Source of the DNA: Setoptus koraiensis
Taxonomy: Eukaryota; Animalia; Arthropoda
Length of the DNA: 64,000 nucleotides
NCBI GenBank assembly: GCA_048013815.1
Contig: CM106586.1
Coordinates: 10,292,001 to 10,356,000, forward strand
Direction: 5' to 3'
The position numbers and the translations under genes were made by a program. Position 1 is the stretch's first letter, and every line of letters starts with the position of its first letter. Positions 8,309-30,010 of this stretch are shown piece after piece. Under the pieces are notes generated by a model. That model worked only from the letters and a program-made list of their open reading frames with translations. It had not been told where the DNA came from and ran no database searches.

Positions 8309-9300
8309 CCCCACAACGTACCCTGTACATGCTGCACCTGTGCTAGTTCCAGACTTTCACCGCTAGGCGACTATTTACAAAATTAGTTTTCTTTTGTGTT
8401 CTGGCGAAGTTATTTGTGGTCAGAATTCAGATTTTTTTGTGTCGTTGTTATTAGTCAGACGAGGATTATCGATTTAACCATCCTTTAGTCAATTGGAATG
8501 AACAACAATAGCATAGAACCCCATAGTCTTCTCGTGAAATTTTTGCTTTCGCGCCAATTTCGGTCCCTCAGTATTATCCCCTCAGACTAAAAGTATCATC
8601 ATACAATAGAACTATTCAAGACGCTTTCATTGATACGAAAATTGTCGTAAGAAAACCGAGACTAAGATCAAAAATAGACAAACAGGTGAATTACTGTGGA
8701 TGATCCATGATCACAATGGTGTAATCTGGGTCTAGCTAGCCAAAACACTGTAGGATCTGTTATTCCTTGTTTTCATCTCTTGAATCATGATCAAAATTGT
8801 TATACGACTCGGGATTCTTCGATATTATTATTCATGACAACTTTATATTAATAGTATGATCAGGCTACCATGAAATTTTGGCTGCATTTTGCAGCAAACA
8901 CATTTGTAGGAAAAAACTAAGGCGACCATCCGTGATCATTCTTATCACACATCACAAAAACCTCCACCAACCAAAGCCGTTCCTTCAAACATCTTGAAGA
9001 TCTTTGTATTATAAAAAAATTTTCACAACAAAAAATAATATTTTAATACCACAATAATCTGATCTGATATAATATCTGATACGACAATAGCCAAAAAACT
9101 GAATGAAACCACTCATTTGAATACAAAATGGATAGATTGTAAGTAGAAAATCAGAGCATTGAGATTGTATCGAACTGTTCATACATATGGTCATTAGAGA
9201 TAAATTCAAATTTTCTTTCATTCATCTATCCCCCCTCTAAAATACTTCCAGAGGAAGCATAAGTAGCTACAACAGTCAAACTAGTGATCAAGATATCGGT

Positions 9301-10056
9301 AGGGCTACTGTAAAATTAAATGTCTATGATATGGTCTCCATGGCTGGTCTTAACCAGTATTCGTCACCCATCGGGTTCGGAGTATTTCACTCAGGAGTAG
9401 AGGTGTTTGACTGTGAATACGCTTACGGTGGCCACAATTTTTCACATACTGGTGTATTTGAAATAGCACCACGCGATGTTCAGGTACTTGGTGAGGATAG
9501 TTTTAAATTTCGTGAAACATTATTGATTGGTTATACCGACTTTGATTCAAACGATGTCAAACAGATTGTTGACTCTCTAGGGAACAAATTTCGGGGAGAT
9601 AAATATCATCTTTTACATCAAAATTGTAACCACTTTACCGACGCATTGACTAAGGTTTGTACAGTTTATTTTTTTAAATTCACTACTGTTGATAGAATAT
9701 TGTTATATTATATATCTAATCTAATATTTCTATTGTCTACATATCGTACACAAATCGCGTCTCAACATTAGGTTCTATGTGGTCAAGGTATACCTTCCTG
9801 GGTTAATAGATTAGCATATGTGTCATCCAGTTTGCCCTTTATTGAAAGGTGGTTGTCAAGATACATGCCTCTGGCTCCTGGCGATCAAGACCTTTCTAAC
9901 GACGCCAAAGATGATGAACCTAGTTCAACTCCACCCACTCCTCAGAGTACAACCGATTCGAGAGTCAGTGCTCTCGGAAATTTCTGGCGATCAACCAGAT
10001 CCCTTAATAACGGCCCTGGTACCAGCAGAAGTGGCGATAGAACCACAAATAGATAA
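9301..10056 (+). CDS. DESI2: PPPDE-family desumoylating isopeptidase (DeSI2/PPPDE1); 5' end uncertain
   Basis: VKLNVYDM...GVFHSGVEV (catalytic His) and YHLLHQNCNHF (catalytic Cys). Intron 9655..9771 (AAG|GTTTGT...CATTAG) joins to VLCGQGIPSWVNRLAY. Frame is open from 9241 after a possible acceptor at 9251, so an upstream exon is possible. Confidence 0.93.
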
Positions 10057-10395: not shown

Positions 10396-10856
10396 TCTCA
10401 GAATGAAACATATTATTTCAGCGACACAAACTTCGAATTAATTTTATATCTACCCGATGCTGCTCTCCAAGAGTTGAAAAAGAAATGTGGTCCCGGAAAC
10501 TCGTTTTTTTCCAACAAGATCTATTCTGGAGTAATTGAAAGTGAATGAAAATGGCTGTGCCGCAATGTATATGATCAAGCCCGGACTGTTCAATGCATAA
10601 TATACAGTTTCACATCATTGAGATGTTCCACAGCATTCCTCGGCTGGGTCATCGATGACCCAGCCGAGGAGTTCGTGTCGCGAATTTGAAACTCATTTTC
10701 CTCAGAAACCCGGCACTTAGGGAGCAATTTTTTTCGTATAATGATCTACCTTGAGACTTTCGACAAGACTGAAATCAAGATTTCAAAAAATCCGAGTGTC
10801 ACAGAAACATATGTTTCCTTGTTAGTGTAGTAAAAGAACTGTCGCTCATTTTGAGA
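10396..10856. mobile_element. Putative small non-autonomous insertion with short imperfect TIRs and an internal palindrome
   Basis: Absent from the paralogous flank at 14120-14145. Ends are TCTCAGAATGA...GCGACA and TGTCGC-TCATTTTGAGA. A perfect 34-bp palindrome lies at 10637-10670. Confidence 0.45.
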
Positions 10857-11345
10857 TAGATCGATTGAAGAATAGAAAAGCATCAATGAGAGTTGCGGCC
10901 TGGTCTTTATGGTATCATTCAGACTTCAACACTATGACTCGATCCTCTCTTGTAAAACCTATCCATTGTTTCTAAAATGAGTTCAGTATCTAACTCTTCT
11001 CTTTGTTGAGACACATTCGTTTCAGAATTGTCTGACAATTCTTGCGAAATTGTATGCGTTGAGGGTTCACAAAACGATGATGACTGAGACTCTTGCAACC
11101 CGACCGCGATCTGATTGTCCACGATTACAGATTTCGAATCACTGTGAAACTCATCATTTGCCTCATCGTAGTTCACATATTCCCCTGAGATATTCGCAGT
11201 GCATCTGGACAATCGTTAGATATCGGTCCCTTGGAAGCAAGGGTTTCTTCGATCAGGTCATAGTTTGGCTCATGTTCGTTGGCCCATCGCTGTAGGTTAA
11301 ATTGTCATCATCGTGGCTCAAAGTGCGACCATCACTCCGACTGAT
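10857..11345 (-). pseudogene. Truncated, frameshifted 3' copy of the mini-Kibra gene (no WW exon)
   Basis: Matches the C-terminal part of 14206-14710 and 27964-28480 (TLSHDDDN, FCEPSTH, EELDTELILETMDRFYKR). A deletion near 11270 and a 1-nt loss near 11185 break the frame. Upstream sequence is unrelated. The 3' flank similarity resumes at 10329-10395. Confidence 0.85.
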
Positions 11346-12572
11346 ACGCGAGTTTGCGGCTGGCAGTGGCGATATCTTGCCAAATCTGGCACCCGATGAA
11401 ATTGAAGAATTTCTGTGATTATGTAAATAAAAAAGTGATCTTGATCGAGATTCAAATCTCTTCTCGCTGGCTGGACGCAAGCAATTCATTATCACGAACA
11501 CAAGTTGCCGGGTGGCTGCGTTTGGCCGGTTCCGGGTGAGCGAATATGAGCAAGCGAGCAATGGCTGTGAATATCGAGCAATGTGTATGTGTGTTGGCTG
11601 TGAATATCGAGCAATGGCAGCGAAAAAGCGTCTCGAGATAACATTTGATTAATGAGCGCCTGTTGATCGCCGATAATAACGGTAATAATGATATAATGAA
11701 TGGCCGGCGAGTTTGCCTAGTTTGTTGTTGCTGATAATGCGAGCGACGGTTGGCTAAAATGTGTCCGCCGCCGCCGACGACGACAACCTGTTCCGTTGCG
11801 TCCTCTGGCCAGCTAATCAAACGTTAACGATCAGCGAGCAAGCTGTTTATCCGGCTGAATATGGCAGTCGGCGCTGGCACACTTGCCGGCGCTCATTAGC
11901 CGACTACTACCGCTTTCACTGTTAATTCCAATTTCAATTTCAATTTTGAATCTAATTCTAATTTCAATCTCGCCATTGCCACCAGTGCTACCCGATGATC
12001 ACGACCTGATCACGATAATCGTCCAGCTTGATTCATGTTGACTCTCTCTCTCTCTCGCTCTGCCTCCCTCGCTTGGCAACAATCGGGCGTTATTATTTGT
12101 GCGCGCTATAATTGTGTTGCAATAAAAATATTAACCGTTGCAATAACGGTTAACATGTTTATAAACATTATCGACTCGCCGGGCAGCCCGCGACAGGGAA
12201 ATGACTCGTTGATGGCGTTGTTAGTGGCAGCGAGATCGATTCAAAGCCAACGGGAACAGCAAGTGGATCGGAAGTGGGCAGGCGCGACAGGATGAATATT
12301 TAATAGTCACGGTACTCACACAGGTGATGTGGTCACTTATCAATCTGTTGCTCTGGGCCATTACGTATATTGTGCATATTGTGTGTATTATGTATATCGT
12401 GTGTATTATGTATATTGTGTATATTTGATTATGACGACAACGCATTACGTAACGCCGGCCAGTGACAGCAGCTGATAAGCGTTACGGTATTGCTACTAGT
12501 GCAACATTGTTGTGCCGTGATACTGGCGTGCGCATTACACAATAGTGTTGCTGCCATGTGACCGTCGCCATA

Positions 12573-13535: not shown

Positions 13536-14205
13536 TCGACTATTAGACTACTATTGGAGACTCGACCAACCGAGACTCGCTATTGATGGCCGCACAAGCT
13601 CACAAGCAAACAGATACTTGTTAAGAGAGACACTTGTTGGTCAATCCCACCACAATTCCCACACCGTTCCCAACACTGATCGGTCAGTGCATCACACTAA
13701 TTGCAGCCAATTGACAGTTCCCCCCCGACAGAAATTCAAATTCAGTCACATTCACAGGATACCTCAAGCAGAACGAAGAGCTAATTGGTGCAATGTAAGG
13801 CGAAACGAAGTTGCTGCTGTAAATGGCATTTTGTCAGCAACTTGTTCCGTCGACGCCACTCTTGGCCCGGACTATATAATCTAAACTATAAAATATACAA
13901 CTGGAATCAGTACCCATGCCAGCCATCGTTAGCATAATTAGTTACTATTAGATTGTGTTATTTGGTGCATCATCATTATAAACTAAGAAGAAAGATATAG
14001 TAATAATCAAGTTTCTGTAGAACGCATTGTGCAAATAAACACGAGCTCCTAACCAGTGTATAAATTGATCTTGAAAACGTCATATTCTATTCTAACGATA
14101 TACTGTCTAATAGCACCTTCACGTCTTAGTCTAGTTGAAGAGATAGATCGATCAAAGAATGGAAACGCATCAATGAGAGTTGCAGCCTGGTCTTTATGGT
14201 ATCAT

Positions 14206-15473
14206 TCAGACCTCAATACTATGACTCGATCTTCTCTTGTAAAATCTATCCATAGTCTCTAAAATGAGTTCAGTATCTAATTCTTCTCTTTGTTGAGACA
14301 CCTTCGTTTCAGAGTTGTCGGACAATTCTTGCGAAATCGTATGCGTTGAAGGTTCACAAAACGATGATGACTGAGACTCTTGCAACCCGACCGCGCTCTG
14401 ATTGTTCGCTGTTTCAGATTTCAAATTACTGTGAAACTCATCATCGTAGCTCACATCTTCCTCCTGAGATATTCTTTGTACAGCTGGACAATCGTTAGAT
14501 ATCGGTCCCTTGGAAGCAATGGTTTCCTCGACCAAGTCATAGTTTGGCGAGTAACATGGATTCGAAGCTATTTCATTCTTACACAATTGATTGTGTAACT
14601 GATGGCACATAAGCGGTTTGCTAGCAGAATCAACAAGTCTCATGTTTGTTAGCCCATTGCTGTAGGTTGTATTGTCATCATCGTGGCTCAAAGTCTGACC
14701 GTCACTCACTGATACGTGTTCGTGGCTCCACCTGATTTCTTTATAGTTGGAAGGGACCGTTCTCTGTATGGATTTTCCCTGAGCTGTCGACACAGTATCT
14801 GTCTTATGGTGATCGCCGAGAACGTTGTGAGTAGTCATATCGTTCGGTAACGAAGAGATAGAACTGCCAATCGCGTTGGGAGGTTTAAATTTATTTATCT
14901 GATAGGAGCAGCTCGTCATGGTGGTACATTGTCCAGAACAATCTGTATAATTGCTAAAAGTTAAATTTGGCCGGCTAGAAAACTTTGGAGCTACATTGTG
15001 TTTGGGTGGGCTCACTTCGAGGCATGACTTGTGATGGTCCGAACATTTCGTTTGGTAAATCTGATGATTGTTGGTGTTACCGGCTCGCTGGAGATAATTA
15101 TTCAGCATTTGTAGTCGCTTATTTTGCCATTCTATTCTAGGGTCTTCCAGTTGATTCTTCCTTTCTATGTGATTTGCGAAATAAAAACCTTTTCACACCA
15201 AATGAGATGTTAGAGGTTGAGGTTAGTTTGAGTGAGGATTCCGATAAAAATTATTCCTCAGTATTAGTGTTGATGCTTACCTATCTTCGGATCATACAAT
15301 TTTTCCCAACCGTAGGGCAGTTGATCGCCAGAACAATCCGCAAAAGATGCTGGCTTGGTGATGAAAGGATGAAGCCATTGTGTTGTCTTTAGTCTATGGT
15401 TTACCCAATACATTCTTGAGTCCGAATCAAGTGCTGGCTCCCATTCTTTGTCGTCGCCAATATCCGTAGACAT
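14206..15473 (-). CDS. kibra: Short Kibra/WWC-like protein, copy 1 (391 aa): tandem WW domains + low-complexity tail
   Basis: Exons 15473..15281 and 15188..14206, 92-nt GTAAGC...AAAG intron, in frame. WEPALDSDSRMYWVNHRLKTTQWLHP-FITKPASFADCSGDQLPYGWEKLYDPKIGFYFANHIERKNQLEDPRIEWQNKRLQMLNNYL parallels KIBRA [59 protein letters not shown] (recalled), including the atypical WW2 lacking the second Trp. Confidence 0.85.
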
Positions 15474-16243
15474 GACGACTATGTCAGATGAGGAAATTTA
15501 TTTTGATGATGAAAATCTTTGAATATCCGAATTATATTTACACATAATTACATCAGTAATGAGAACCGATCTTTTATGCGGTCAAAAAACCGTCATTGAA
15601 TCAGACTGGTCATCTGTTGATGCGTGCACCATTCTACGCTGATGCGCGCATCAATATTGTCGTCCAACTTGAACGGTTCAAGTAGCCGTGTAATTTTTGT
15701 TGTTGTACTATGATTGTTAGAAACATTGTTTGTCAAGTAAAAGATCGGTTGTTATAGTTAGCAATTTATTATTATTTCAAATTCTGTCAGTTCAACAGTT
15801 TATAAATGTTGTTGTCAATCATGGATACAATAACTATAAGTCTTTGTCGTCTGTCTCAAGTTCGATACTCATTTAATATCGATTGGGCATCAACGTATTG
15901 GCCGGATGGGTAACTTTTCTTGATTTGTCTTCCATTTATCCTGATCGTCCCTTCTTGCTTCGGGTGTTAATTGGTTCCTCAAACCAACGAGAACGTTTTG
16001 TGCACCTTCCGTTACGGATATAATTGGATTTAATAATGTAGACGGTATGTGACGAACTAATTCACCCATAGCGCCGCGCATATCATCGGCCTGCATACCG
16101 GCGGCCACATTTCGAACAGTGTCATTGAAACCTTCTCTCATTATCGTATAAGCTTGTGTCATGCCCTCGCAAAAGTTCCTCGGTTGATTCAAAATCATAT
16201 GATGGTTATTACTTGATCCTCGATGCCTTCCATTCTGCATGTT
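14206..16243. repeat. Segmental duplication copy A (pairs with 27964..30010, offset ~13.77 kb)
   Basis: Near-identical sequence over ~2.04 kb. Identity ends abruptly after CCATTCTGCATGTT (16243/30010). Confidence 0.95.
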
Positions 16244-16273
16244 AGCGAGAGAACAGCAGTGTCTTGATGTCAT
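15890..16273 (-). pseudogene. Duplicated ATG2 C-terminal fragment (last ~117 codons) fused to a fortuitous upstream ATG
   Basis: The 127-aa ORF is MTSRHCCSLA followed by NMQNG...PIRPIR, identical in protein to the end of ATG2 at 29657-30010. Expression is unknown. Confidence 0.8.
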
Positions 16274-16895
16274 CTATTCTTTATCTGGCGGGCGCGTTCT
16301 TCTCGAACGCACATTAACATAGTATAAAGAGCAGCGCTCTGTGTGCGATGGGCGGCAGTAATGAAAGAGTTTATACTCAATTTCGATTCAAGTGTGAACA
16401 ACAATACAACAATTACAACAACAGCAATAACTACAACAACAACAAATGCTCAAATGAATAATGGTTCAACTTTATGTATTGCGCTTGCGAGCATCTAGCG
16501 ACTATGCGAGCTGATAAACACGGTTAATAATTACGTAAACGGTACACGATACAACGGTGCGGCGTAGTTTGTGCTCGTGTTAGGGTACAATTTATAGTTT
16601 ATAGTGTTGTGTTATAACAGTTTCATATTGTTTTATAGTGTTGCTTCCATCCGTCGTGTTTGCCCTGCGCATTTAACGTTTTCACTTCTCGCCAGCGTCT
16701 AACGGCCAACAGCTTGATTTGGTTGATTTTTTCCAAGTTAAAACGCGTAGTCGCAGTGAGTTAGTCGTAAGCAGCAAATTCGCGAGCAAATTCTCGCCTC
16801 TCGCAATACGCAACTCTCAACAGTAGCTCACAAATAGCAGGCAACTCAACACGCAAAAATAGTGTTACCTAGCAAAATAGTTGCTACTTTTAGTG

Positions 16896-17033
16896 ATGGA
16901 CAGTAGCGATAATAGCGACAGCAGCAACAACAACAACAGCAAGAATCCAGCCAGTTATTATGTCTCGACGATCGACATGGATGGTCAGTTGTTTCAGCAC
17001 GAACAGCAAGCTTGCGAAGCTTTGTTATTTTGT

Positions 17034-17064
<31 letters not shown>

Positions 17065-20000
17065 AGCAATTGCTAATTGGCCAGCAGCACCTAGATCAGC
17101 ATCAATATCTAGACGAAGATCCGTCATGCAACGATTCGGCCGCAATACTATTGCAACAGCAACAATCCGTCAGTTTACAAGCAACGATTGATACCATTTC
17201 AGGCGCTGGTTTGTACCAGCAACAGTACGCAATAGCCAGTAATCATCATCACCAGCAACAGCAGCAGCAGCAATTAGTTTTAGATGAGGCTGACAATATC
17301 AGTTTTTGCCACAATCAGAATCAGATTGATGCACCAAATCATATCGACGACAATCACAGTGATGAATACAGTAACAATGGTATCATATTGCCACTGTTGC
17401 GAAGCGAACCGTTTAGTGTTGAGCAACTTAATGACAACAGTGTCATCATCAAGTATTACCGAGACGACGATCTTAAGCAATTGATTTGTGATCATTTTAA
17501 ATTGTCGCTGAGTAGCCTGACGCTGCACTCCACCGAACAACAATCGTCGTCGCAACAGCAGCATCATCAACTACAACTACATCAGCAATGTAGTGGAACA
17601 GCAACAACGACAACTACGAAAATCATCAGTTGTCCGTCATCTTCGCAACTCGATCAACAAACGAAACAATCAACGTCTTCGCCAACGAGCCTTGCCCATC
17701 ATCGAGCCAACAAGACGAGGAGGCCGAGACAGCAGCAGCAACAGAATCAAAACGTCAGACACAGACAAGTGAAACAGGAACCACAAGCGGTAGCAGTGGC
17801 ATCTCGACTGGATAAGTGTGAGTATCTCATCGAATCACAAGCAAAACTAATCACCAAGAATAATCCGAATGCGAATGATATCCGCTGCTCGTTTGCTCGT
17901 TTGCATTATTATTATGGCGCCATTATTACTATTTGTGGCACCGTGTTCTTGACTATTTAATCCTCTTCGATTTGCTAACTTCATTGTTTGCTCTTTTGGT
18001 TAGCCGGCGGTGATGCAGTCTGATGTAGTAGCTTCGATGTAGATGTAGTAGCTGTTACAACTGTGGGCTACTGTTCGAATTCATTGTGCTGTCACATAAA
18101 TAGATATATTTTTTTTTTCAGATTTCAAGCACCGTCACTGTCTGCTATTAACCATTATGATCCGCCGTCAACATCACCACCAACAACGACGACAACAACA
18201 AGTCATCGTGACATCATAACGTTTTGGCGTTATGTCTTACGTTTTGTTTTGTTTTGTCTTGTCTTGTTTTGTCTCGAGTGTGCGGCGGCGCCCGCCGAAT
18301 TGAGAGTCAGACAAGAGTGACAGACAGAGGAACACGTCAAGATGGTGAACAAACAAACAAAGAAACAAAGAAATAAAAACAATGCAATCAATTACAACAC
18401 ACCAAATGGATAAATAAGCCATTGAGATGATCGCGCGACAACGACAACGATGATCATTGTCGTCCATATGTGAGCTAATGTAGCAACTTCATGATAAATT
18501 GAACAACGTATAATTACATAATGATACAGCGATAAAACATCATCATCATGATCATATACTCGTGTTCGTGTACCATCTACTCTAGTTATCACAGTGTTAC
18601 GCCATAACAGCTTTACATGAACCATACCACTACTGTCGCTGCTGTTGTCGCTGTTGTCGCCGTTGTCGCCGTTGTTGTTGTTGTTGTTGTTGTTTGTTGT
18701 TGTGTCTCGGCGTAACGTTATTTTAGACGTTTTTTAGTGCGACTAGTTTTTTAGCGCCAGTCAGTCTAGTTAGTTAGTTGTCAAAGAAGCATGACGCTCT
18801 GTTATGAGCTGTTTAACTTTTTACTACTATTTGCCAAATTATGCTCATCATCGTTCTCGCTCTCTCAAGACAAGTATCTCTGCAAGACACGATTTAATTT
18901 ACTAGTTGTTACTTTTGAGTTGTGCACCATACAGTATACTAATAGTGACGCATTTCTTCTTATTATATTTTTAACCCTTTTACGCAACCTTTATCGTCAC
19001 CCTTTCACTCTGTCATGCTCTCATTCGCCGCTAATCAATTTAGCTGCCTACACGACGACCCCAACAGCGCAACAATTACAATATAATCATTCGCAACAAG
19101 CACGCCAACTAGGTGACAACAATAACAATGGCAACAATACATGTAATAATAACATTAACGGGCCATCGGACTATGGCGACCCTGTTGATGCCAGCGGCCG
19201 GCTAGCGCCAACGGTCTTGGCCCCCGCCGATATTTGCAGCGGGCCAGCCGATATTTGCAGCGGGCCAGCCGATATTTGCAGCGGGTCAGCGCCTGATGAA
19301 AATGATGCCATCATGAGCGAGCCAGACGCCGATCACAATGGGACCACTATTATCGAAGCGGCCGGCTCCATCAACCTGGCGGGCGCCCCCGACGGCTACA
19401 CCAACAAACCACATCCACAGCAAGCCACCGGTCAGCACCATTACGGGCCGGTGCATCGGCTGCCGGCGGGCGACGGTCAGCCATTGCCATCGATTAGGAA
19501 CCAACAACAGCAACAGCAGCAGCAGCAGCAACTTTGCGGGACGTTGCTGTTCTCCTGCCAGCAACAGCAACAACAGCAACAACAACCGCTACATAACCAA
19601 CACCTCAGTGCTCATCAGCCGCTAGATCATCATCTAGATCAGCAGCATAATGATCCGAATCATAATGAGCAACAGCAATATTTGAATACGCACGATTACG
19701 TGCACAATTGTGGCCCATTTATCGACATTGTTCACCGGTTGGATCAAAACAATCAGCACCATTTGAGCACCAGTCACAATGAGTCGCAACAACAACAAAA
19801 TCACCACTCGATCTACAGCAGCAGCCAAAACAATGGCTGCCCCTTGAACGAGCTCAGCAGCCTGACTGTTTCAGAGACTGTACAACAGACCACAACCACC
19901 AGTCTGCAAACAACAATTGGACCCTATCACCTTCACGATGACCAGCACCAGCAATATCATGCACCGATGTCGGCCAACGAGCAGGCCTACCAGCAACAGC

Positions 20001-20413
20001 ATCACAGCTTCCATCGTCAGCAGCAGCAGCAGCAATATTTAGACGATGATTATTCGCACAATTGCTCGCCATTCGCCCTCAATTCCGTCCGTCTTGGTCA
20101 GCAAAACAATCACCATTTAAGCAGCCACGAATCACAGGAACAAAATCATCATTCGATATACACCAACACCAGTCCGTTAGTGGACAGTGTCCAGCCTGTG
20201 GCCGCACACACAAGTAGCGCTGGCCCGGCCGTCGATGGTCACTATCATCACCATCAACAGCAACACTATGGCGCCAGTATGGCAAGCGGCGAGCAGTTGC
20301 TGCTGGACAATGGCGACGCCAATATTTGTCACCAAAATCAAGGTGCAATTGTGTTGCAAATCAACAAACCAACGGACGGTGGTGCGTACAGGTTCCCCCC
20401 GTACACTTCATGA
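16896..20413 (+). CDS. Gln/His/Asn-rich intrinsically disordered protein with internal repeats (tentative two-exon model, ~763 aa)
   Basis: Two long ORFs (16881..17960, 18791..20413). The phase-1 donor GTGAGT at 17818 and the acceptor GCTAATCAATTTAG ending 19043 join in frame. The two ORFs share motifs (QYLDE/DD..C, LD..D.N..CH.Q). An alternative acceptor at 18121 is possible. No folded domain recognised. Confidence 0.45.
19226..19288 (+). repeat. 21-bp coding tandem repeat x3 (ADICSGP)
   Basis: GCCGATATTTGCAGCGGGCCA x3, read directly. Confidence 0.9.
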
Positions 20414-22042
20414 TGTGATATTGTGAGATTGAGCAGCAACCACATTTGCGCAATTAAATCACCGGTGGCTCTCATGACCATCGGCCATCCTCATTTGCCT
20501 CTTCTGGCCTCTTTTCTGTTCGCTGCGCGTCTGCATTTCGCTCGCCGTTTGCATCTCGCTCGCGGCCACTAACCGTCGCCGATGAAACCGCTCCAGTTCA
20601 TCGCCCCCGGCCGGTTGACCGTCCGTCCGTCCGTCTTGTGTTCGGGGCCCCATTTTCGCGTAATCGATCGGCGTCATACGACAGCGCGCGATCGATACGG
20701 GTACGTGTTGGCGCGTTGTTGCCGGCTGCAGTATAGGCCAGACACTCAATCTGACAGTGGCACCAACAACGACAGCAGCAACAACGACAGCGGCAACAAC
20801 AACAGCAGCAACAACAACAGCGGCAGCAACCGGGCAACACCAAAACAACGACAAACTGACTTGTGATATCGGCCCGCTGACACTGTCACACTGATATTGA
20901 CACTGACAGGCAGCAACTTGCGCGCAATCAAAAAATTCAATATGTCATACATGGCCAACATGGCGCCGCTGTCCGATCGGTGCAACCACTTGCCAAACAA
21001 CTAACGTCTCGCGCCCGGCGCGTGCTCACGATGATGATCAATAATAATAATAATAATAATAATAGTCAAGCGCGATAATGAATTTTGGCGCTGATGAAAC
21101 AAGCAGCCCTATAGTTATCGCATTAGTACACGGGTGCATGATGTAGTTGTTGCTGTCGTTGTTGTTGTTGTTGTTGTTGTTGCTGCTGCTGTTGTGCGTC
21201 GGTGTCGTGTGGCCGGCCGCAATGGCCGTAGATGCCCTGTCGTCCGGGCGTTCGTTGTTTGCTGTCAGACGGGCAACAGACTCGCTCTGTAGTCTATATC
21301 TGGGCCAGTTCTTGAAAGAACCGCCACCACTACCGACAACAACAACCGATATTAATAACAACAGCGCCGACGACAATAACAATAATAAAATTGCCCCTAA
21401 GAGTGCTAGATGCAACGATATATGATATCATTTGATTCTGGCCCCTCGCACGCACTATCGCTCGACGTTGTCGCTGTCGCTGTTGTCTCCGTCGTTGTTG
21501 TTGTTGTTGTTGTTTTGGCCCCAACTTTCCGAGCGGTAGTATCTATAATACAAGTCGGCGCTCGTGTTTTTCATTGTGTGTATTCGTACGTCCGCGCTTG
21601 TGTGTATACAAGTGTGTGCGCGTCAATCTATTACGTAACCTCTGATAGTGGCCTCACCGCCACTATCACTGTCGCCTCCACTGGAGTGTCGACACCGATG
21701 CAACTGACTTTGCTGCTGCTGCTGCTGCCTCAATTGATAGCAATAGTTGAACATGGCAGTAGTAATTGATTATTGTGCGCATCATTGCCCCGTGCAAGTG
21801 CGACCCGCCAGCCAGCCAGCCATCGTGTTGTCGCCAACAAACACACAAATTGCGCAATACCCAAACCTTTGCAAACTCCCATCCATTGGGCACCCCATAA
21901 TAACTTGTAAACAATGGAGAGTCAAGCGTGTAGGTGGCTCAGCCAACTATATCATTTAATTTGGCCCCCTGTTTGACGGTAATTTGGGCACCGCGAAAAC
22001 AATTAATGTGCGCCGCCTCGGCTTGTGTTTGCACCGGTCACA

Positions 22043-22170
22043 AGTAGCTACAACAGCGGTCAAACTAGCGATCAAGATATCGGTGGGGCCACTGTAAAAT
22101 TAAATACCTATGATATGGTCTCCTATGGCGGCTCTTGACAGTATTCGTTACCCAACGGGTTCGGAGTATT
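22043..22170 (+). pseudogene. Orphan decayed fragment of the DESI2 5' coding region
   Basis: AGTAGCTACAACAGCGGTCAAACTAGCGATCAAGATATCGG...GGGTTCGGAGTATTT matches 9263-9386 with indels. Confidence 0.85.
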
Positions 22171-23084
22171 TATAATTAAATTTCAGAAGATTCTGATGAG
22201 CTTAAGCCAAAATTGAGCAAGAGTTGAGCGAAGCCGCAACAAACTAGTGATAAAAATTTTCGCGATCTGTTCGTTCAGGAACGCGAAAGAGTGAGAATGT
22301 AAGCGAACGAAGGTCCAAATAGAGTGTTGAATCGATCGAACACATCAAAGGCTCTGTGTCGAAGAGAACCGTTTGTTGAAATAAGCATTCATTAGAGTTT
22401 GAGAACAATTTAAGTCCAGTCCACTTTTGGACGCATCACATCTTATTTGATATCATCCTCCACAATGGTGACTATTGCGAAAATCGATTTCTTATTGATA
22501 AACCCTCAAACATACAATCACTGTATGCTATTTGAAATTGGTGTAATATGTTGGCGCTACTACAAAGAGTCCATTTCATTTATTTATCATATTAAGAGCA
22601 ACAATCAAGCCCACATGCAATTGCTAACTGCACCTAGAACGAATAAACAAATTATGCCAAGCGGATTCGTTGATCAAGACACCTCTGAATAGACGGGAGG
22701 AGGGGGAAAAGCTTGAGAAATCCAAAAAGATGGCCTCCAAGCTCGTGCAAACACGCAGAGATGTACAAATTCGATAGTACATAAACCGAGAGAGCTGAGA
22801 AACTTTACGATGATTATGTGGAGAGTGGCATCAATCCGTTATGGATAATGAAGTCGTCATGCAGGATACATCAGGGATCCAAAATCGGTTGGTTTCGATT
22901 CTCTTTTGTTTTCTACTTCGGTTTACTACACAAAAATTATGAGAGCATTCTAAATTTATCTCTGTCTGTTCCTTCTAGACACGACTGTATATCGACTAGA
23001 AATTCAACAATAAATATGATACGATAACAGTTATTCTTTTAGCAAAGGCCAAGCTAACTAGACGATGTTCCGTCGCGATCACAT

Positions 23085-23321
23085 CTATTTAGACTGCGAT
23101 TCTTGTGAAATCTTGGCATCTTCCATTTCACGGTGCTCCAAATTTATCAATTCTTCGGAGTTGGTCAACCCCATTGCTCTGAGCGCACTGTGTTTCATCT
23201 CATTCGATGTCGGATTAAATACGCTGGTCTGAGTGAATACTAGATAAATAAATGTAGGGAAAGCAAAATAGATCAATAACTTCGATCTCTCAAACCGGTG
23301 GCGAGGCGTTCTTACGGGCAT
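23085..23321 (-). CDS. PET100: PET100-like cytochrome c oxidase assembly factor, 78 aa
   Basis: FERSKLLIYFAFPTFIYLVFTQTSVF aligns without gaps to recalled human PET100 LEIFRMIIYLTFPVAMFWVSNQAEWF. Single TM, charged C-terminal tail, matching length. Head-to-head with the ALT gene. Confidence 0.7.
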   Translation of the reverse strand: MPVRTPRHRFERSKLLIYFAFPTFIYLVFTQTSVFNPTSNEMKHSALRAMGLTNSEELINLEHREMEDAKISQESQSK

Positions 23322-23816
23322 TCTCGTGCTCCAGTTGTAATTACGAGGATTCTTCGATCGACAGTGTTAGAGATTAGCCTAAAATACCAAGTTACTGTTG
23401 CATTGAGTCCAAATATTTGCTTATTGGAGTGGATTTGGCGAGTTGGGGTCAAGCTTTCGATCTTGGATTCTGTGTTTACTCGAGAATAGAAAAAACATCT
23501 GTTTTTGGCACCAAAAATAAAGCAAGCGCACGCACTCCGTGCAGCGGATAAATAGTGTAGCTATAGTGACATCATCGTGATAATTTTAGACTCTTAACCT
23601 TCGTTGCTGTTGTGGGCAGAAAACTAAAAAATTGCGACTCTGTTCTTATATCCGTCTTTAGCAACATTCATTGGAGTGTAATCTCAACATTAATCATAAT
23701 CTCAAATTCTATCCAGTAACTGCCCCAGAAACTCAAATTGTATTTGGAAATTAGATTTGGAAAGATAAAAAATAGTCCGGGTATAAATTCAAGTGCAATT
23801 AATCTCATCCTCAAAA

Positions 23817-25253
23817 ATGGCACCAATATTATGTCCTGACAATATCAATCAAAATGTTCGCAATCTGGAATATGCTGTTCGGGGACCATTGGTCATCAGA
23901 GCCGTGGAGTTGGCGAAAGAGCTCCAGAACGGAGCGGAAAAACCATTCAAGAGTGTAATTCGAGCAAACATTGGCGATTGTCATGCCATGCAACAACATC
24001 CACTAACCTTCTTTCGGCAGGTAGTTTCGTGCGCTGCTAACCCAGAAATTATGGACAACAACCCAAACATACCCGATGACGTCAAGGAACACGTGAAAAA
24101 AATTCTTTCCAGTTGTGCTGGTGGCTCTGTTGGGTCTTATTCGGACTCGTGTGGTTTAGAAGTCATAAGGCGGCAATGTGCTGACTATATTACTGAAAGG
24201 GATGGATTCCAGGCCGATTGGCAAAATATCTTCCTCACAACAGGGGCCAGCGAAGTAGTTAAGGTTATATTATCGCTCATCAATAACTCGAAAAAGCCAG
24301 GTTTGCCAGTGGGAGCCATGATACCAATACCTCAATATCCTCTCTACTCTGCCACTCTTTGCGAATTTGGAATGTATCAAGCCAGCTACTATCTAGATGA
24401 AGAGAACGATTGGCGCCTACAAATAGAGGAGCTCGAAAGATCTTACGAGGCAGCCAAAGACAAATGTGACCTTAAATTGATAGTCATTATTAATCCCGGA
24501 AATCCCACCGGAGCTGTTCTTTCGAAGGATAACATTGAAAAGATAGTCCAATTTGCTCAATCACATAACCTAATGATCATTGCAGATGAAGTCTATCAGC
24601 ACAATGTTTGGGCGGAGGGTGCTCAGCATCATTCATTTAAAAAAGTTATGCGTGAGATGGGCGCTTCTAATGAACTAGTATCCATGATGAGTGCCAGCAA
24701 AGGCTACATGGGTGAGTGTGGTCTACGTGGAGGTTATGGCGAACTTCACAACTTTACACCCGAAGTGAAGGCCATATTATATAAGTTATTGTCTGCCAGA
24801 CTCTGTTGTTCCGTACTTGGACAGGTAACAATGAGCTGTGTTGTGGATCCACCAAAAAAAGGTCAACCCTCCTATGAGTTGTTTGAGAAAGAACGGCAGA
24901 AAGTACTAGCAGATCTGAAATATAAGGCAAAACTGGTGGCAGATACGTTCAATTCTATTGAAGGCATCAAATGCAATAAAGTGGCTGGAGCCATGTACGC
25001 TTTTCCCAAGATAGATTTGCCACAGAAGGCCATAGAGGCGGCCGAGAAGGCCAATCAGAAGCCTGATTTTTTTTATGTTATGACACTGCTTGAAGAGACC
25101 GGCATATGCGTTGTCCCTGGTTCTGGGTTTGGCCAAATTCCTGGTACTTATCATTTCAGGACAACTATTCTGCCGCAACCTGATACTTTCGCAGACATGA
25201 TGAACAGATTCAAACAGTTTCATGTGAGATTCATGCAACGCTACAAGCAATAG
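23817..25253 (+). CDS. GPT: Alanine aminotransferase (PLP-dependent, class I/II), intronless
   Basis: EYAVRG, ANIGDCHAM, IIVINPGNPTG-like segment (IVIINPGNPTG), ADEVYQ, SASKGYMGECGLRGGY (PLP lysine), CVVPGSGFGQ..GTYHFRTTILP. First ATG at 23817. Confidence 0.96.
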   Translation: MAPILCPDNINQNVRNLEYAVRGPLVIRAVELAKELQNGAEKPFKSVIRANIGDCHAMQQHPLTFFRQVVSCAANPEIMDNNPNIPDDVKEHVKKILSSCAGGSVGSYSDSCGLEVIRRQCADYITERDGFQADWQNIFLTTGASEVVKVILSLINNSKKPGLPVGAMIPIPQYPLYSATLCEFGMYQASYYLDEENDWRLQIEELERSYEAAKDKCDLKLIVIINPGNPTGAVLSKDNIEKIVQFAQSHNLMIIADEVYQHNVWAEGAQHHSFKKVMREMGASNELVSMMSASKGYMGECGLRGGYGELHNFTPEVKAILYKLLSARLCCSVLGQVTMSCVVDPPKKGQPSYELFEKERQKVLADLKYKAKLVADTFNSIEGIKCNKVAGAMYAFPKIDLPQKAIEAAEKANQKPDFFYVMTLLEETGICVVPGSGFGQIPGTYHFRTTILPQPDTFADMMNRFKQFHVRFMQRYKQ

Positions 25254-25615
25254 ATGGCGATAGATGTGACCAAATAGATGTTATGATTTATCTAGACTGT
25301 GCATTTGTTTGATTGGGAAATTAATAGTATTATTATTCAAAAAGTTATCTCCAAGAGATGATTTCTTTCAATTAATAAAAGTAACAATAATATATCCCTG
25401 CGATGTCCATTCCATCACATATATTGCCGAGATAATCAGTATCACGGTCTCGCCATGGAAGTTCTCTTTAAAGAGTATCTCTGGTCATATTTTATATTCT
25501 TTGGTATTTGTTTATATTGTTGTTAGATCGTAGGGAGGTTACGAACGGAGATCTCTATCTATATTTGAATTTTGATTGAAATTTTCTCAATTACTTTCTT
25601 TGAGATGTCGACTGA

Positions 25616-26280
25616 CAAGGTAAAGCCTTATATGGGGTACAAGAGATTCCAACTGACTATAGGGTTGTTACACACAACAATGAAAGAGATGTTTTAATCG
25701 TTATTTTTCTTTGTTAGCCGAGCCAGATTCCAACTGACTATAGCCTAGATCTTCTCTCCTGATCAAGCTGAGCAAGAAAGGGTATATAAAAACCTCAACT
25801 AAAGTCTAGTTTCTGGAATAATCGTGATAATTTTCAAAACTCTATTGTTTTGCTTCTAATCGTCGTAAGAATATAGTATTAGGTGATTTGAGTTGAAATA
25901 AAGTGTAAATTTTGACAATTATTATTAATTATTAATTATTTATTTGTTGAAATACGCCCATTTACTACTTTACGAATACGCTCGCTGTACTAATTACGCT
26001 GGGAATTACCAACCAACCAACCAATCAATCAAAATTTTCATTATCAGCCCTGATATTTTCTGAAATTTATCTTCCACCCCAAGCACCATCCGTAGATGCT
26101 TGAGGGACTATTGTGGATCCAAATACTTGGTCTAATTTCAGAAAATACGAAGAAAAGTCTAGAATTATTTTGGCCGAAGTTGGGAACGAGACTAGCGTAT
26201 TCTTGTTCTCGGTACACTGGAGAGTCCAGAAAGACTATAGTGGGTGTACTCTGAGTGTCCACCCGAGGAGGTTAACCTTG
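25616..26280 (+). mobile_element. MITE copy 1 (~665 bp), degenerate TIRs CAAGGTAAA.../...GGAGGTTAACCTTG
   Basis: Reverse complement of 27342-27921 along its length. Carries an extra segment flanked by a 19-bp direct repeat AGATTCCAACTGACTATAG (25644 and 25725). No transposase ORF. Confidence 0.8.
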
Positions 26281-27059
26281 AAAGTTGAACGAGTTGACAA
26301 AATAGCCAAACGAGACCAAATCAAACCAAAGAATTTAACCAACCTACCAAACAAGCCAACATAGTCAACACAGCCAACACAATCAACACGGCCAGCCAAC
26401 CAGACAAACCAAACCAACCGAACCAACCAACCAACTAAAGCCAGCAACCAACCAACCAAACCAACCGAGAGAAACATGTATCGACGTAGAAGATGTCAAG
26501 GACGACAGTCCAATGGCCGCCCATTCATTGCACCAGACAGTGATAAAAAAGACGCTACTCGAATAGACAGAGGTTACAGGCCGACCTCAATCTATCAAGT
26601 TAGTAGATTGTGCGTGTCGAAGATTGCGACGCAGCTAATTGACGATAATACTGATGTCGCCACGCAAACTAGTCTACAAACGTCTGAAGTCTAAAATGTA
26701 CGGGTATCTGATCTCGATGATCATTTCGGTGATGTTCAGTGGTCAGTGAGCGATGGCTCAAGCTACGACTCCTCATAAATGGAACAATACTACGACATTC
26801 GTAAATTCCACTCGCTAAGGATGGTAACCACGTGTCATGCGATTTGCACCACAAAGAATGCTCAATGAACGTATGTTTTGTGCGCTACTCGCATATCGAG
26901 CACACATGTGAATAAACTTGAAACTAACAATAGCTACTAAAGATATCTTTGATTGCCTTATCTCATCTATATTTGATCCTTATTGACATTATTCAATCTG
27001 ATGAAATGGTCCTTTTTAAAATAGTATTAGTTGTTGGTATGTAAGAAAAATGGTTTGGT

Positions 27060-27335
27060 ATCGTTTGCTCGAATATCATAAGCTCGACTTTTTAGAAGCT
27101 CGACTTCGTTTGCTCGAAACTTGTATGCTCGAAATCGAATGCTCGACTCATTTGAAGCTCAACTCTCAAAATGTCGACAAAATTCATATTGAGCAGCTAT
27201 ATATTTAGCAAATAGATCAATGTTTTATCTTATGTTGAAGTTGGTTGGTTGGTTGGTTTGGTTGCAAAATAATAAAATGTTATGATCAAGAGAGTCGAGC
27301 TCGAAACAAGTCGACCTTTTAATAAATCGAGCTTT
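27060..27335. repeat. Cluster of GCTCGA/TCGAGC subrepeats plus (GGTT)n, probably part of another decayed element
   Basis: About six GCTCGA in 27065-27150, reverse-oriented TCGAGC at 27295-27332, GGTT run at 27240-27262. Confidence 0.55.
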
Positions 27336-27341
27336 CACTGA

Positions 27342-27921
27342 CAAGGTAAACCTCCTAGAGGTGACACTCAGAATACGCCCACTATAGTGAACTCTCCAGT
27401 GTACAGAGAACAAGAATACGCTAGTCTCGTTCCCAACTTCGCCCAAAAAAATTATAGACTTTTCTTCGTATTTTCTGAAATTAGACTCACTATTTGGATC
27501 CACAATAGTCCCTCAAGCATCTACGGATGATGCTTGGGGTAGAAGATAAATTTCTGAATATATCAGGACTGATAATGAAAATTTTGGTTGATTGGTTGGT
27601 TGGTTGGTAATTCCTAGCGTAATTAATACAGCCAGCGTATTCGTAAAGTAGTAAATGGGCGGATTTCAACAAATTTGTGGATTTTTTGGTGTCAAATAAT
27701 TGTCAAAATTTACACTTTATTTCAACTCAAATCACCTAATACTATATTCTCGCGACGAATAGAAGCAAAACAATAGAGTTCTGGAAAATATTACGATTAT
27801 TCCAAAAACTAGACTTTAGTTGAGGTTTTTATATACCTTTTCTTACTCAGCTTGATCAGGAGAGAAGATTTAGGCTATGGTCAGTTGGAATCTTTTGTAC
27901 CTGGAAAGGAGGTTTACCTTG
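27342..27921 (-). mobile_element. MITE copy 2 (580 bp) with perfect 15-bp TIRs CAAGGTAAACCTCCT / AGGAGGTTTACCTTG
   Basis: TIRs read directly. The right end is followed by TA (Tc1/mariner-like; the left flank is GA). Internal (GGTT)n microsatellite. Inverted relative to copy 1. Confidence 0.85.
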
Positions 27922-27963
27922 TAAGCTTCCTCCGCTATCATGGCGTCGTCTCTATGATAACTT

Positions 27964-29240
27964 TCAGACTTCAACACTATGACTCGATCTTCTCTTGTAA
28001 AACCTATCCATTGTTTCTAAAATGAGTTCAGTATCTAATTCTTCTCTTTGTTGAGACACCTTCGTTTCAGAATTGTCTGACAATTCGTGCGAAATTATAT
28101 GCGTTGAGGGTTCACAAAACGATGATGACTGAGACTCTTGCAACCCGACCGCGATTAGATTGTTCGCAGTTTCAGATCTCGAACTACTGTGAAACTCATC
28201 ATTTGCCTCATCGTAGCTCACATCTTCCTCCTGAGATATTCTTTGTACAGCTGGACAATCGTTAGATATCGGTCCCTTGGAAGCAATGGTTTCCTCGACC
28301 AAGTCATAGTTTGGCGAGTAACATGGATTCGAAGCTATTTCATTCTTACACAATTGATTGTGTAACTGATGGCACATAAGCGGTTTGCTAGCAGAATCAA
28401 CAAGTCTCATATTTGTTAGCCCATTGCTGTAGGTTGTATTGTCATCATCGTGACTCAAAGTCTGACCATCACTCACTGATACGTGTTCGTGGCTCCACCT
28501 GATTTCTTTATAGTTGGAAGGGACCGTTCTCTGTATGGATTTCCCCTGAGCTGTCGACACAGTATCTGTCTTATGGTGATCGCCGAGAACGTTGTGAGTA
28601 GTCATATCGTTCGGTAACGAAGAGATGGAACTGCCAATCGCGTTGGGAGGTTTAAATTTATTTATCTGATAGGAGCAGCTCGTCATGGTGGTACATTGTC
28701 CAGAACAATCTGTATAATTGCTAAAAGTTAAATTTGGCCGGCTAGAAAACTTTGGAGCTACATTGTGTTTGGGTGGGCTCACTTCGAGGCATGACTTGTG
28801 ATGGTCCGAACATTTCGTTTGGTAAATCTGATGATTGTTGGTGTTACCGGCTCGCTGGAGATAATTATTCAGCATTTGTAGTCGCTTATTTTGCCATTCT
28901 ATTCTAGGGTCTTCCAGTTGATTCTTCCTTTCTATGTGATTTGCGAAATAAAAACCTTTTCACACCAAATGAGATGTTAGAGGTTGAGGTTAGTTTGAGT
29001 GAGGATTCCGATAAAAATTATTCCTCAGTATTAGTGTTGATGCTTACCTATCTTCGGATCATACAATTTTTCCCAACCGTAGGGCAGTTGATCGCCAGAA
29101 CAATCCGCAAAAGATGCTGGCTTGGTGATGAAAGGATGAAGCCATTGTGTTGTCTTTAGTCTATGGTTTACCCAATACATTCTTGAGTCCGAATCAAGTG
29201 CTGGCTCCCATTCTTTGTCGTCGCCAATATCCGTAGACAT
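27964..29240 (-). CDS. kibra: Short Kibra/WWC-like protein, copy 2 (394 aa)
   Basis: Exons 29240..29048 and 28955..27964. Same WW1-WW2 as copy 1; differs only in the last ~90 residues. Ends ...ETMDRFYKRRSSHSVEV. Confidence 0.85.
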
Positions 29241-30010
29241 GACGACTATGTCAGATGAGGAAATTTATTTTGACGATGAAAATCTTTGAATATCCGAATT
29301 ATATTTACACATAATTACATCAGTAATGAGAACCGATCTTTTATGCGGTCAAAAAACCGTCATTGAATCAGACTGGTCATCTGTTGATGCGTGCACCATT
29401 CTACGCTGATGCGCGCATCAATATTGTCGTCCAACTTGAACGGTTCAAGTAGCCGTGTAATTTTTGTTGTTGTACTATGATTGTTAGAAACATTGTTTAT
29501 CAAGTAAAAGATCGGTTGTTATAGTTAGCAATTTATTATTATTTCAAATTCTGTCAGTTCAACAGTTTATAAATGTTGTTGTCAATCATGGATACAATAA
29601 CTATAAGTCTTTGTCGTCTGTCTCAAGTTCGATACTCATTTAATATCGATTGGGCATCAACGTATTGGCCGGATGGGTAACTTTTCTTGATTTGTCTTCC
29701 ATTTATCCTGATCGTCCCTTCTTGCTTCGGGTGTTAATTGGTTCCTCAAACCAACGAGAACGTTTTGTGCACCTTCCGTTACGGATATAATTGGATTTAA
29801 TAATGTAGAAGGTATGTGACGAACTAATTCACCCATAGCGCCGCGCATATCATCGGCCTGCATACCGGCGGCCACATTTCGAACAGTGTCATTGAAACCT
29901 TCTCTCATTATCGTATAAGCTTGTGTCATGCCCTCGCAAAAGTTCCTCGGTTGATTCAAAATCATATGATGGTTATTACTTGATCCTCGATGCCTTCCAT
30001 TCTGCATGTT
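27964..30010. repeat. Segmental duplication copy B (source locus, contiguous with full ATG2)
   Basis: Near-identical to 14206..16243. Continues directly into the intact ATG2 reading frame. Confidence 0.95.

Follow-up and report, generated by a model that had tools for sequence, protein, structure and literature searches.

Can part of the Kibra scaffold be maintained as a gene in its own right? The question is raised by a 64,000-nucleotide stretch of the genome of the arthropod Setoptus koraiensis (positions 10,292,001 to 10,356,000 of contig CM106586.1, assembly GCA_048013815.1), referred to here as the window, which contains two near-identical genes whose products begin like Kibra and end within 400 residues. 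Kibra, a memory-associated protein in vertebrates, acts upstream in the Hippo growth-control pathway as a central scaffold. Its functions have been assigned to modules, namely the WW tandem, the coiled coils, the C2 domain, the aPKC site and the PDZ ligand. On balance we think it probable that a stand-alone short Kibra-like gene was recently duplicated in the window, that both copies are functional, and that they encode an adaptor that bridges PPxY proteins to a scaffold engaged by its C-terminus. The components of this explanation are supported to different degrees, and we take them in turn.

The preliminary description of this locus proposed two intact two-exon genes of 391 and 394 amino acids (aa), ending in (I/V)EV, and the gene models and their introns of 92 nucleotides (nt) bear this out. 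Both genes lie on the minus strand. Copy A (391 aa) has a first exon at 15281..15473, comprising 64 codons and 1 nt, which in our splice reconstruction encodes the start codon, the first WW domain (WW1), the inter-WW linker and the first half of the second (WW2). A phase 1 intron of 92 nt with GT..AG ends follows (15189..15280; GTAAGC..AAAAG), and exon 2 (14206..15188) supplies the rest of WW2, an alpha-C helix, a polar region of about 260 aa, a conserved C-terminal block and the terminal ...SIEV before the stop codon. Copy B (394 aa) has an identical exon 1 (29048..29240) and an intron that is also 92 nt long (28956..29047), while its exon 2 (27964..28955; 330 codons including the split one) carries a 9-nt insertion relative to copy A and ends ...SVEV, again directly before a stop. 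The two proteins end ...ETMDRFYKRRSSHS(I/V)EV, with I at position -2 (ATT) in A and V in B. The intron interrupts a Gly codon within WW2, and the joined product reads as an unbroken second WW domain (...DPKIG/FYFANH..., the slash marking the junction).

The predicted junction could be compared with a contig from run X7, in which 28953 is joined directly to 29046 with zero mismatches. The segment left out is precisely 92 nt long and, read on the plus strand, has CT..AC at its ends. As this joint coincides with the predicted GT..AG intron, the contig lacking it is best read as a spliced transcript. The type of run X7 is not on record, its depth is patchy (2-6, about 3), and the exon joint is uninformative on A versus B. 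The copy-A-type 3' end is also present in this run, in a contig with A-type 3' variants.

Comparison with known sequences and structures identifies the N-terminal ~100 residues as a WW tandem of the Kibra/WWC type, complete with linker and alpha-C helix, in agreement with the assignment originally made for the WW1-WW2 region. In the remote searches the two exon products were queried separately. The exon 1 product matches the Pfam WW domain (E 8e-11), and in a phmmer search of the PDB its first match is KIBRA WW12 (6j68; E 3e-17), at 65 bits versus 49 for MAGI2, 41 for YAP and 23 for SAV1. The same KIBRA structure is the only PDB match of the exon-2 product (E 1.4e-3), the aligned segment spanning the end of WW2 and the alpha-C helix. 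When the WW region of the protein family described below was aligned with vertebrate WWC fragments by hhalign, the match had a probability of 100 and an E value of 2e-46. Two further sequence features are Kibra-like: the linker signature TKPxxFADCxxDxLPxGWE, and an aliphatic residue in place of the second Trp of WW2.

Structural work on KIBRA gives these similarities a functional context. The KIBRA tandem is a rigid supramodule held together through the linker and alpha-C (Lin et al. 2019, PMC6744271), and residues I35, F47, L57 and W88 are required for nanomolar binding of two closely spaced PPxY motifs (PMC6744271). In the alignments of the PDB matches these residues correspond to L34, F44, Y54 and W85 of the window product, the substitutions being conservative, and MAGI2 likewise has Y at the position of KIBRA L57. 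An AlphaFold2 model of a 147-aa family member (predicted local distance difference test score, pLDDT, 71) consists of two WW sheets and one long helix that runs from alpha-C through the conserved block. We used this model only for ranking, because it does not reproduce the packing of the tandem seen in the crystal; the top five entries found with it by Foldseek are KIBRA WW12 structures, followed by MAGI2 and then SAV1. The ESM Atlas, queried with family member P0005, returned generic WW clusters only.

The window genes do not stand alone in the databases. An exhaustive HMMER search with the exon-2 product, against a library of 1.8 billion sequences, recovered an orthologue and a set of short proteins, to which profile and region searches added more. 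The resulting family numbers about 27 database protein entries of 143-495 aa with a common plan: WW1, linker, WW2, alpha-C, a spacer of a few to about 300 residues, a conserved block, some further residues, and A-V-E/Q-V immediately before the stop. The block has the consensus SL.DSK.RVAQLKRELD.N.NLL.IIDKYYKK in the family alignments, the C-terminus is a near-invariant (A/S)-V/I-E/Q-V, and the invariant columns include V296, L303, D304, L309, E325 and V326 of the window product. Named members are a hypothetical protein of 218 aa from Leptotrombidium deliense (RWS27743.1), the 182-aa 'protein kibra-like' of Oppia nitens (XP_054163539.1) and a Blomia tropicalis protein deposited as a 625-aa model (KAJ6215949.1; P0042). 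Since these come from Trombidiformes, Oribatida and Astigmata, the family spans the Acariformes; it also occurs in many arthropod contigs. We set aside the sole long HMMER match, P0007 (888 aa), a repetitive protein of bacterial type with no relation to the family.

The window products share the features of this family: they are shorter than 500 aa, have an N-terminal WW tandem with alpha-C and a C-terminal block, although a degenerate one, and are encoded by stand-alone genes. Judged by these shared features, they belong to a conserved stand-alone short Kibra-like family. Its only names are the automatic ones of databases, and in the searchable literature a search for Kibra with mite taxa yielded no paper that describes it. 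The suggestion that this is a radically shortened Kibra peculiar to a streamlined genome must therefore be replaced by membership of a family with representatives in three lineages of acariform mites. Of the members that we found, the window lineage is the most divergent. Its linker is shortened (HPFITKP versus DPRDKLTKP in the family), with 22 aa between the WW domains versus 24 aa in KIBRA and the other family members, and its WW1 lacks the usual LPxGWE start. The Trp that matches KIBRA W88 is kept in the window genes and in the O. nitens, L. deliense and B. tropicalis members; in the subgroups represented by entries P0002, P0009, P0016-P0020 and P0022-P0025 it is Cys or Val.

What follows the tandem had been described as a low-complexity tail of about 290 residues ending (I/V)EV. 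The end is as described, but the tail is polar rather than truly low-complexity: its entropy is 4.08 bits, its spacer accounts for about 260 aa, and residues 101-180 are 70-90% identical to those of the orthologue on Logan contig L001, from a related species. A Cys/His-rich stretch within these residues (KCSDHHKSC...DCSGQC, residues ~101-180; 14650-14890 / 28420-28660) is absent from the other family members, which suggests that it may be a lineage-specific functional addition.

Beyond the spacer, the conserved C-terminal block taken alone aligns best to the WWC motif (D/N)P.ILKAEI..AKSRVNKLKR.L at residues ~156-178, which directly follows the WWC Ser-rich linker and is the start of the WWC coiled coil. 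The match is collinear and reproducible, being obtained with the WWC profile and with four single WWC sequences (P 6.5e-5 to 1.6e-2). By this alignment, the conserved tail block of the family corresponds to the first WWC helix after the Ser-rich linker, so the family would represent roughly the first 180 WWC residues plus about 25 of its own. This placement leaves without support the idea that the tail resembles the EKMAFFTR...DDV end of KIBRA. The KIBRA C-terminus is ADDV, whereas the window genes end in hydrophobic-E-V, which is not acidic.

The C2 domain and the long coiled coil of Kibra are missing here, as had been claimed. Pfam gave no match to the 326-aa exon-2 product or to P0001 and matched the family members by their WW domains only. 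The WWC1 coiled-coil domain PF25802 was found neither in the exon-2 product nor in family members at E values up to 1, while vertebrate WWC fragments do carry it. Pfam likewise detected no C2 domain in the gene products, whose open reading frame (ORF) stops after VEV, and no exons for either module were found in the window.

These proteins can be placed among known WW scaffolds with some precision. With Kibra/WWC1-3 (~1100-1300 aa) the window products have in common the WW1-linker-WW2-alpha-C supramodule, at 46-51% identity (57-63% for other family members, one of which was compared with vertebrate WWC fragments over the WW region), and the short family keeps the atypical WW2, the linker signature and the first helical motif after the spacer (AK.RV..LKR.L). 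It differs in having neither PF25802 nor C2 and in stopping about 25 residues after that helical motif with V/I-E-V, and the window gene has only two exons in 1.3 kb. With the acariform short 'kibra-like' proteins the window genes share module order, C-terminal block, V-E-V end and a small stand-alone gene, and they are set apart by the ~260-aa spacer with its Cys/His-rich island and by duplication of the gene. MAGI2/MAGI3, which come second to KIBRA in the PDB sequence search and again in the fold search, have a similar linker and alpha-C, and solved MAGI structures show the same tight tandem binding mode (PMC6744271). The MAGI score is lower (49 versus 65 bits), however, the alpha-C region of the window product matches KIBRA only, and the GuK and PDZ domains of MAGI are absent here, where Pfam finds only WW. 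SAV1 is likewise a small adaptor in which two WW domains precede a C-terminal helical (SARAH) domain, but its WW match is weak (E 6e-4 versus 3e-17 for KIBRA), its WW domains are directly adjacent with no long linker, and Pfam found no SARAH domain in window or family products.

What might such a protein do? Because the supramodule residues are intact, we predict KIBRA-like binding of tandem PPxY partners. The tandem would bind proteins with two closely spaced PPxY motifs (Pez/PTPN14, Expanded, Angiomotin and Warts/LATS), as the KIBRA tandem does, and the short helix may permit self-association. A hydrophobic-x-hydrophobic C-terminus is typical of a class II PDZ ligand or of another end-recognition ligand. 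The invariant end of the family may accordingly dock onto a PDZ or similar end-binding scaffold, so that the protein would serve as a compact bridge that holds PPxY proteins at the cell cortex but lacks what the C2 domain, aPKC binding and the long coiled coil contribute in full-length Kibra. Several points weigh against this proposal. The match of the C-terminal block to WWC is short (23 columns, with a probability of ~50-64%), and in the window proteins the helical block is degenerate (KVSQQREELD...MDRFYKRR versus RVAQLKRELD in the family). The linker is two residues shorter than the 24 of KIBRA, and linker length influences the affinity of the tandem (PMC6744271). The AlphaFold2 model of the family member is of only medium confidence and lacks the crystal packing of the two WW domains, hence its low template modelling scores of 0.35-0.48. 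Run X7, with a depth of about 3 and its unrecorded type, cannot say which copy is expressed. Finally, the proposed PPxY and PDZ partners are deduced from conservation and by analogy with KIBRA.

A broader claim would be that acariform mites have no canonical Kibra, and that this 143-495-aa protein, with its WW tandem, one helix and V-E-V end, is their only Kibra. We regard this as a tentative possibility at most. No canonical long Kibra was recovered by the exhaustive HMMER search with the exon-2 product, a search in which the shared segment of about 35 aa is too short to reach significance, and the word-indexed searches were length-limited and could not return a full-length Kibra. The converse arrangement, in which a full-length Kibra is encoded elsewhere and the short protein is a decoy paralogue that soaks up PPxY ligands such as Warts, Expanded and Pez and lowers Hippo output, is in our judgement unlikely, yet it survives better than the other alternatives. 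A decoy would keep the ligand-binding tandem and dispense with the C2 domain and the WWC1 coiled coil, just as Pfam indicates here, and the name 'kibra-like' given by NCBI to the O. nitens member leaves room for a separate canonical gene. Two observations run counter to it. No full-length acariform Kibra turned up, within the limits of length and word matching just given, and the conserved helical block and near-invariant V-E/Q-V end across the ~27 entries would be superfluous in a pure decoy. As a decoy would need neither the helix nor the invariant end, we favor the compact bridge.

Are both copies under constraint, or is one of them a bystander? The L001 orthologue lies directly after ATG2, with the same start codon and the same intron position and phase (its intron being 86 nt), and it also encodes 391 aa. 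Between copy B and this orthologue, Nei-Gojobori estimates over the whole gene are 0.90 synonymous (dS) and 0.19 non-synonymous (dN) substitutions per site, a ratio (omega) of 0.21. The ratio is 0.06 for the first 100 codons, 0.30 for the middle and 0.18 for the last 40 codons. Non-synonymous sites make up 80% of the total, yet in the comparison of A with B synonymous changes (14.5) outnumber non-synonymous ones (8.5; omega 0.14, binomial P ~2e-5). Both copies are open, and the substitution pattern indicates that the genes are real and under purifying selection, in line with the earlier argument that the keeping of two open copies suggests selection.

The arrangement of the copies indicates how they arose. 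Self-blastn of the window defines a duplicated block of 2.06 kb, present at 14190..16243 and 27948..30010 with 98.1% identity over 2063 nt. The latter lies directly downstream of a complete ATG2 gene, an order also present on the L001 contig of the related species. Along with the gene, the former contains 416 nt of intergenic DNA upstream of it and a relic of the last exon of ATG2 (15890..16243, minus strand), a truncated C-terminus in which the last ~115 ATG2 codons moved with copy A. An ORF at 29657-30181 matches the Pfam domain ATG2_CAD (E 3e-30), and its end recurs in the ORF at 15890-16273. Since B follows a complete ATG2 gene and A has only the relic, we take B as the ancestral locus and A as derived. 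Copy A thus stems from a 2-kb segmental duplication that took the promoter region along, with copy B remaining at the ancestral site after ATG2. A third copy, C, is a 3' fragment (10853..11348, minus strand) with 89-91% identity. It carries a 91-nt deletion as well as a 1-nt frameshift, its reading frame is open over the final 97 codons only, and no WW exon was found near it, so we regard it as a decayed copy.

The divergence of A and B is mosaic. The 5' 1.38 kb contains just 3 differences (0.2%), and the final 650 nt hold 23 substitutions and the in-frame indel of 9 nt (28203-28211 in copy B); some 20 of the substitutions fall within the closing 250 nt (~9% divergent), where copy B often shares its state with fragment C against A. 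(The stretches compared are 14206-14860 and 27964-28627, plus 10853-11348.) The likeliest reading is that an older duplication was later homogenized in its 5' part by gene conversion, or else that a 3' end was converted from another copy. In the scenario that we favor, the 5' 1.4 kb has since stayed or become nearly identical, which suggests gene conversion.

This history also bears on the view that only copy B works, copy A being a young, redundant duplicate that has not yet decayed as fragment C has. Copy A is indeed derived and carries a useless relic of ATG2, the decay of a copy has a precedent here in fragment C, and a 5' 1.38 kb that differs at just 3 sites is what a young duplicate would show. 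The changes between A and B, however, are biased to synonymous sites to a degree not expected under neutrality, their indel is in frame, copy A retains the whole upstream intergenic region, and the A-type 3' variants come from the same run as the spliced contig. We therefore consider a silent copy A rather improbable.

That assembly created the second copy, for instance by leaving a haplotype uncollapsed, is in keeping with the 98% identity of the copies but barely credible, because the block is only 2 kb long with different flanks on both sides and because, in DNA run X1 (possibly the sample behind the assembly, so that its support for the duplication is not fully independent), assembler depth is 208 across the block versus 110 just outside and contigs fork exactly at the block ends, at 30010 into the exact copy-A flank 16244-16273 and at 27948 into an A/C-type 3' flank, observations that argue against a simple artefact. 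In run X4 the depth of the block is 112 versus 25 for its flank (~4.4-fold), and the block contig has 13 differences from copy B; compared with the 2-fold excess in X1, this may mean that block copy number varies between strains or samples.

A canonical Kibra does begin with exactly these modules, and the B. tropicalis model of 625 aa reads past VEV, so one might take the two-exon model as the 5' part of a canonical long Kibra gene with its other exons further downstream. What the B. tropicalis model adds beyond VEV is a Cys-rich protein of no relation, and the model is probably a gene-model fusion, since in its 90% cluster the 470-aa ORFs terminate after VEV. VEV is immediately followed by a stop codon in the three copies of the window, in the orthologue and in every family ORF examined except P0009. 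The gene is also free-standing at five loci of other organisms, where the next gene, 150-700 nt further downstream and encoded by the opposite strand, is an unrelated one, and no further Kibra exons were found downstream at the examined loci (L001-L007). Within the 64-kb window, tblastn with vertebrate WWC N-terminal fragments and family members matched only the WW exons of A and B. The stand-alone loci and the tblastn result together make splicing from exon 2 onward into coiled-coil or C2 exons, an outcome that would have refuted the proposed architecture, very unlikely, and the long-gene model itself can be given next to no weight.

Other features of the window form the setting of the duplication. 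A miniature inverted-repeat transposable element (MITE) copy (27342..27893) lies beside the 3' breakpoint of block B, with an inverted partner at 25725-26280 (90% identity). Read depth is very high at 27700-27972, up to ~20 times the single-copy level, so this MITE-like element must be abundant in the genome. Self-comparison of the window also shows a dispersed 130-nt repeat at 9258-9387 and 22039-22171 (88% identity). Between the copies, at 16881-20413 on the plus strand, are two long ORFs of 359 and 540 aa that are rich in poly-Gln, His and Asn and have no Pfam match. Alanine aminotransferase is encoded by a single uninterrupted ORF of 486 aa (23793-25253, plus strand), and ATG2 on the L001 contig is almost intron-free (one 1871-aa ORF); both are signs of an intron-poor genome, in keeping with a compact one, and membership of the short Kibra-like family points to an acariform mite.

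At the level of the genome, our analyses describe a recent duplication, a probable gene conversion and a decayed third copy of a small gene. At the level of the protein, a conserved family that keeps only the WW supramodule and one helix and ends in a new, invariant C-terminus is in effect a natural dissection of the Kibra scaffold, showing which of its parts can stand alone under selection. Members of 143-151 aa are, moreover, very small proteins for structural and binding work. If it is true that mites lack the long form, the Hippo pathway can be rewired without the C2 and aPKC modules. Were the short form the sole acariform Kibra, the upstream Hippo module would work without a C2 domain, an aPKC-binding site or a long coiled coil, and the members of about 145 aa would mark the natural minimal functional core of Kibra.

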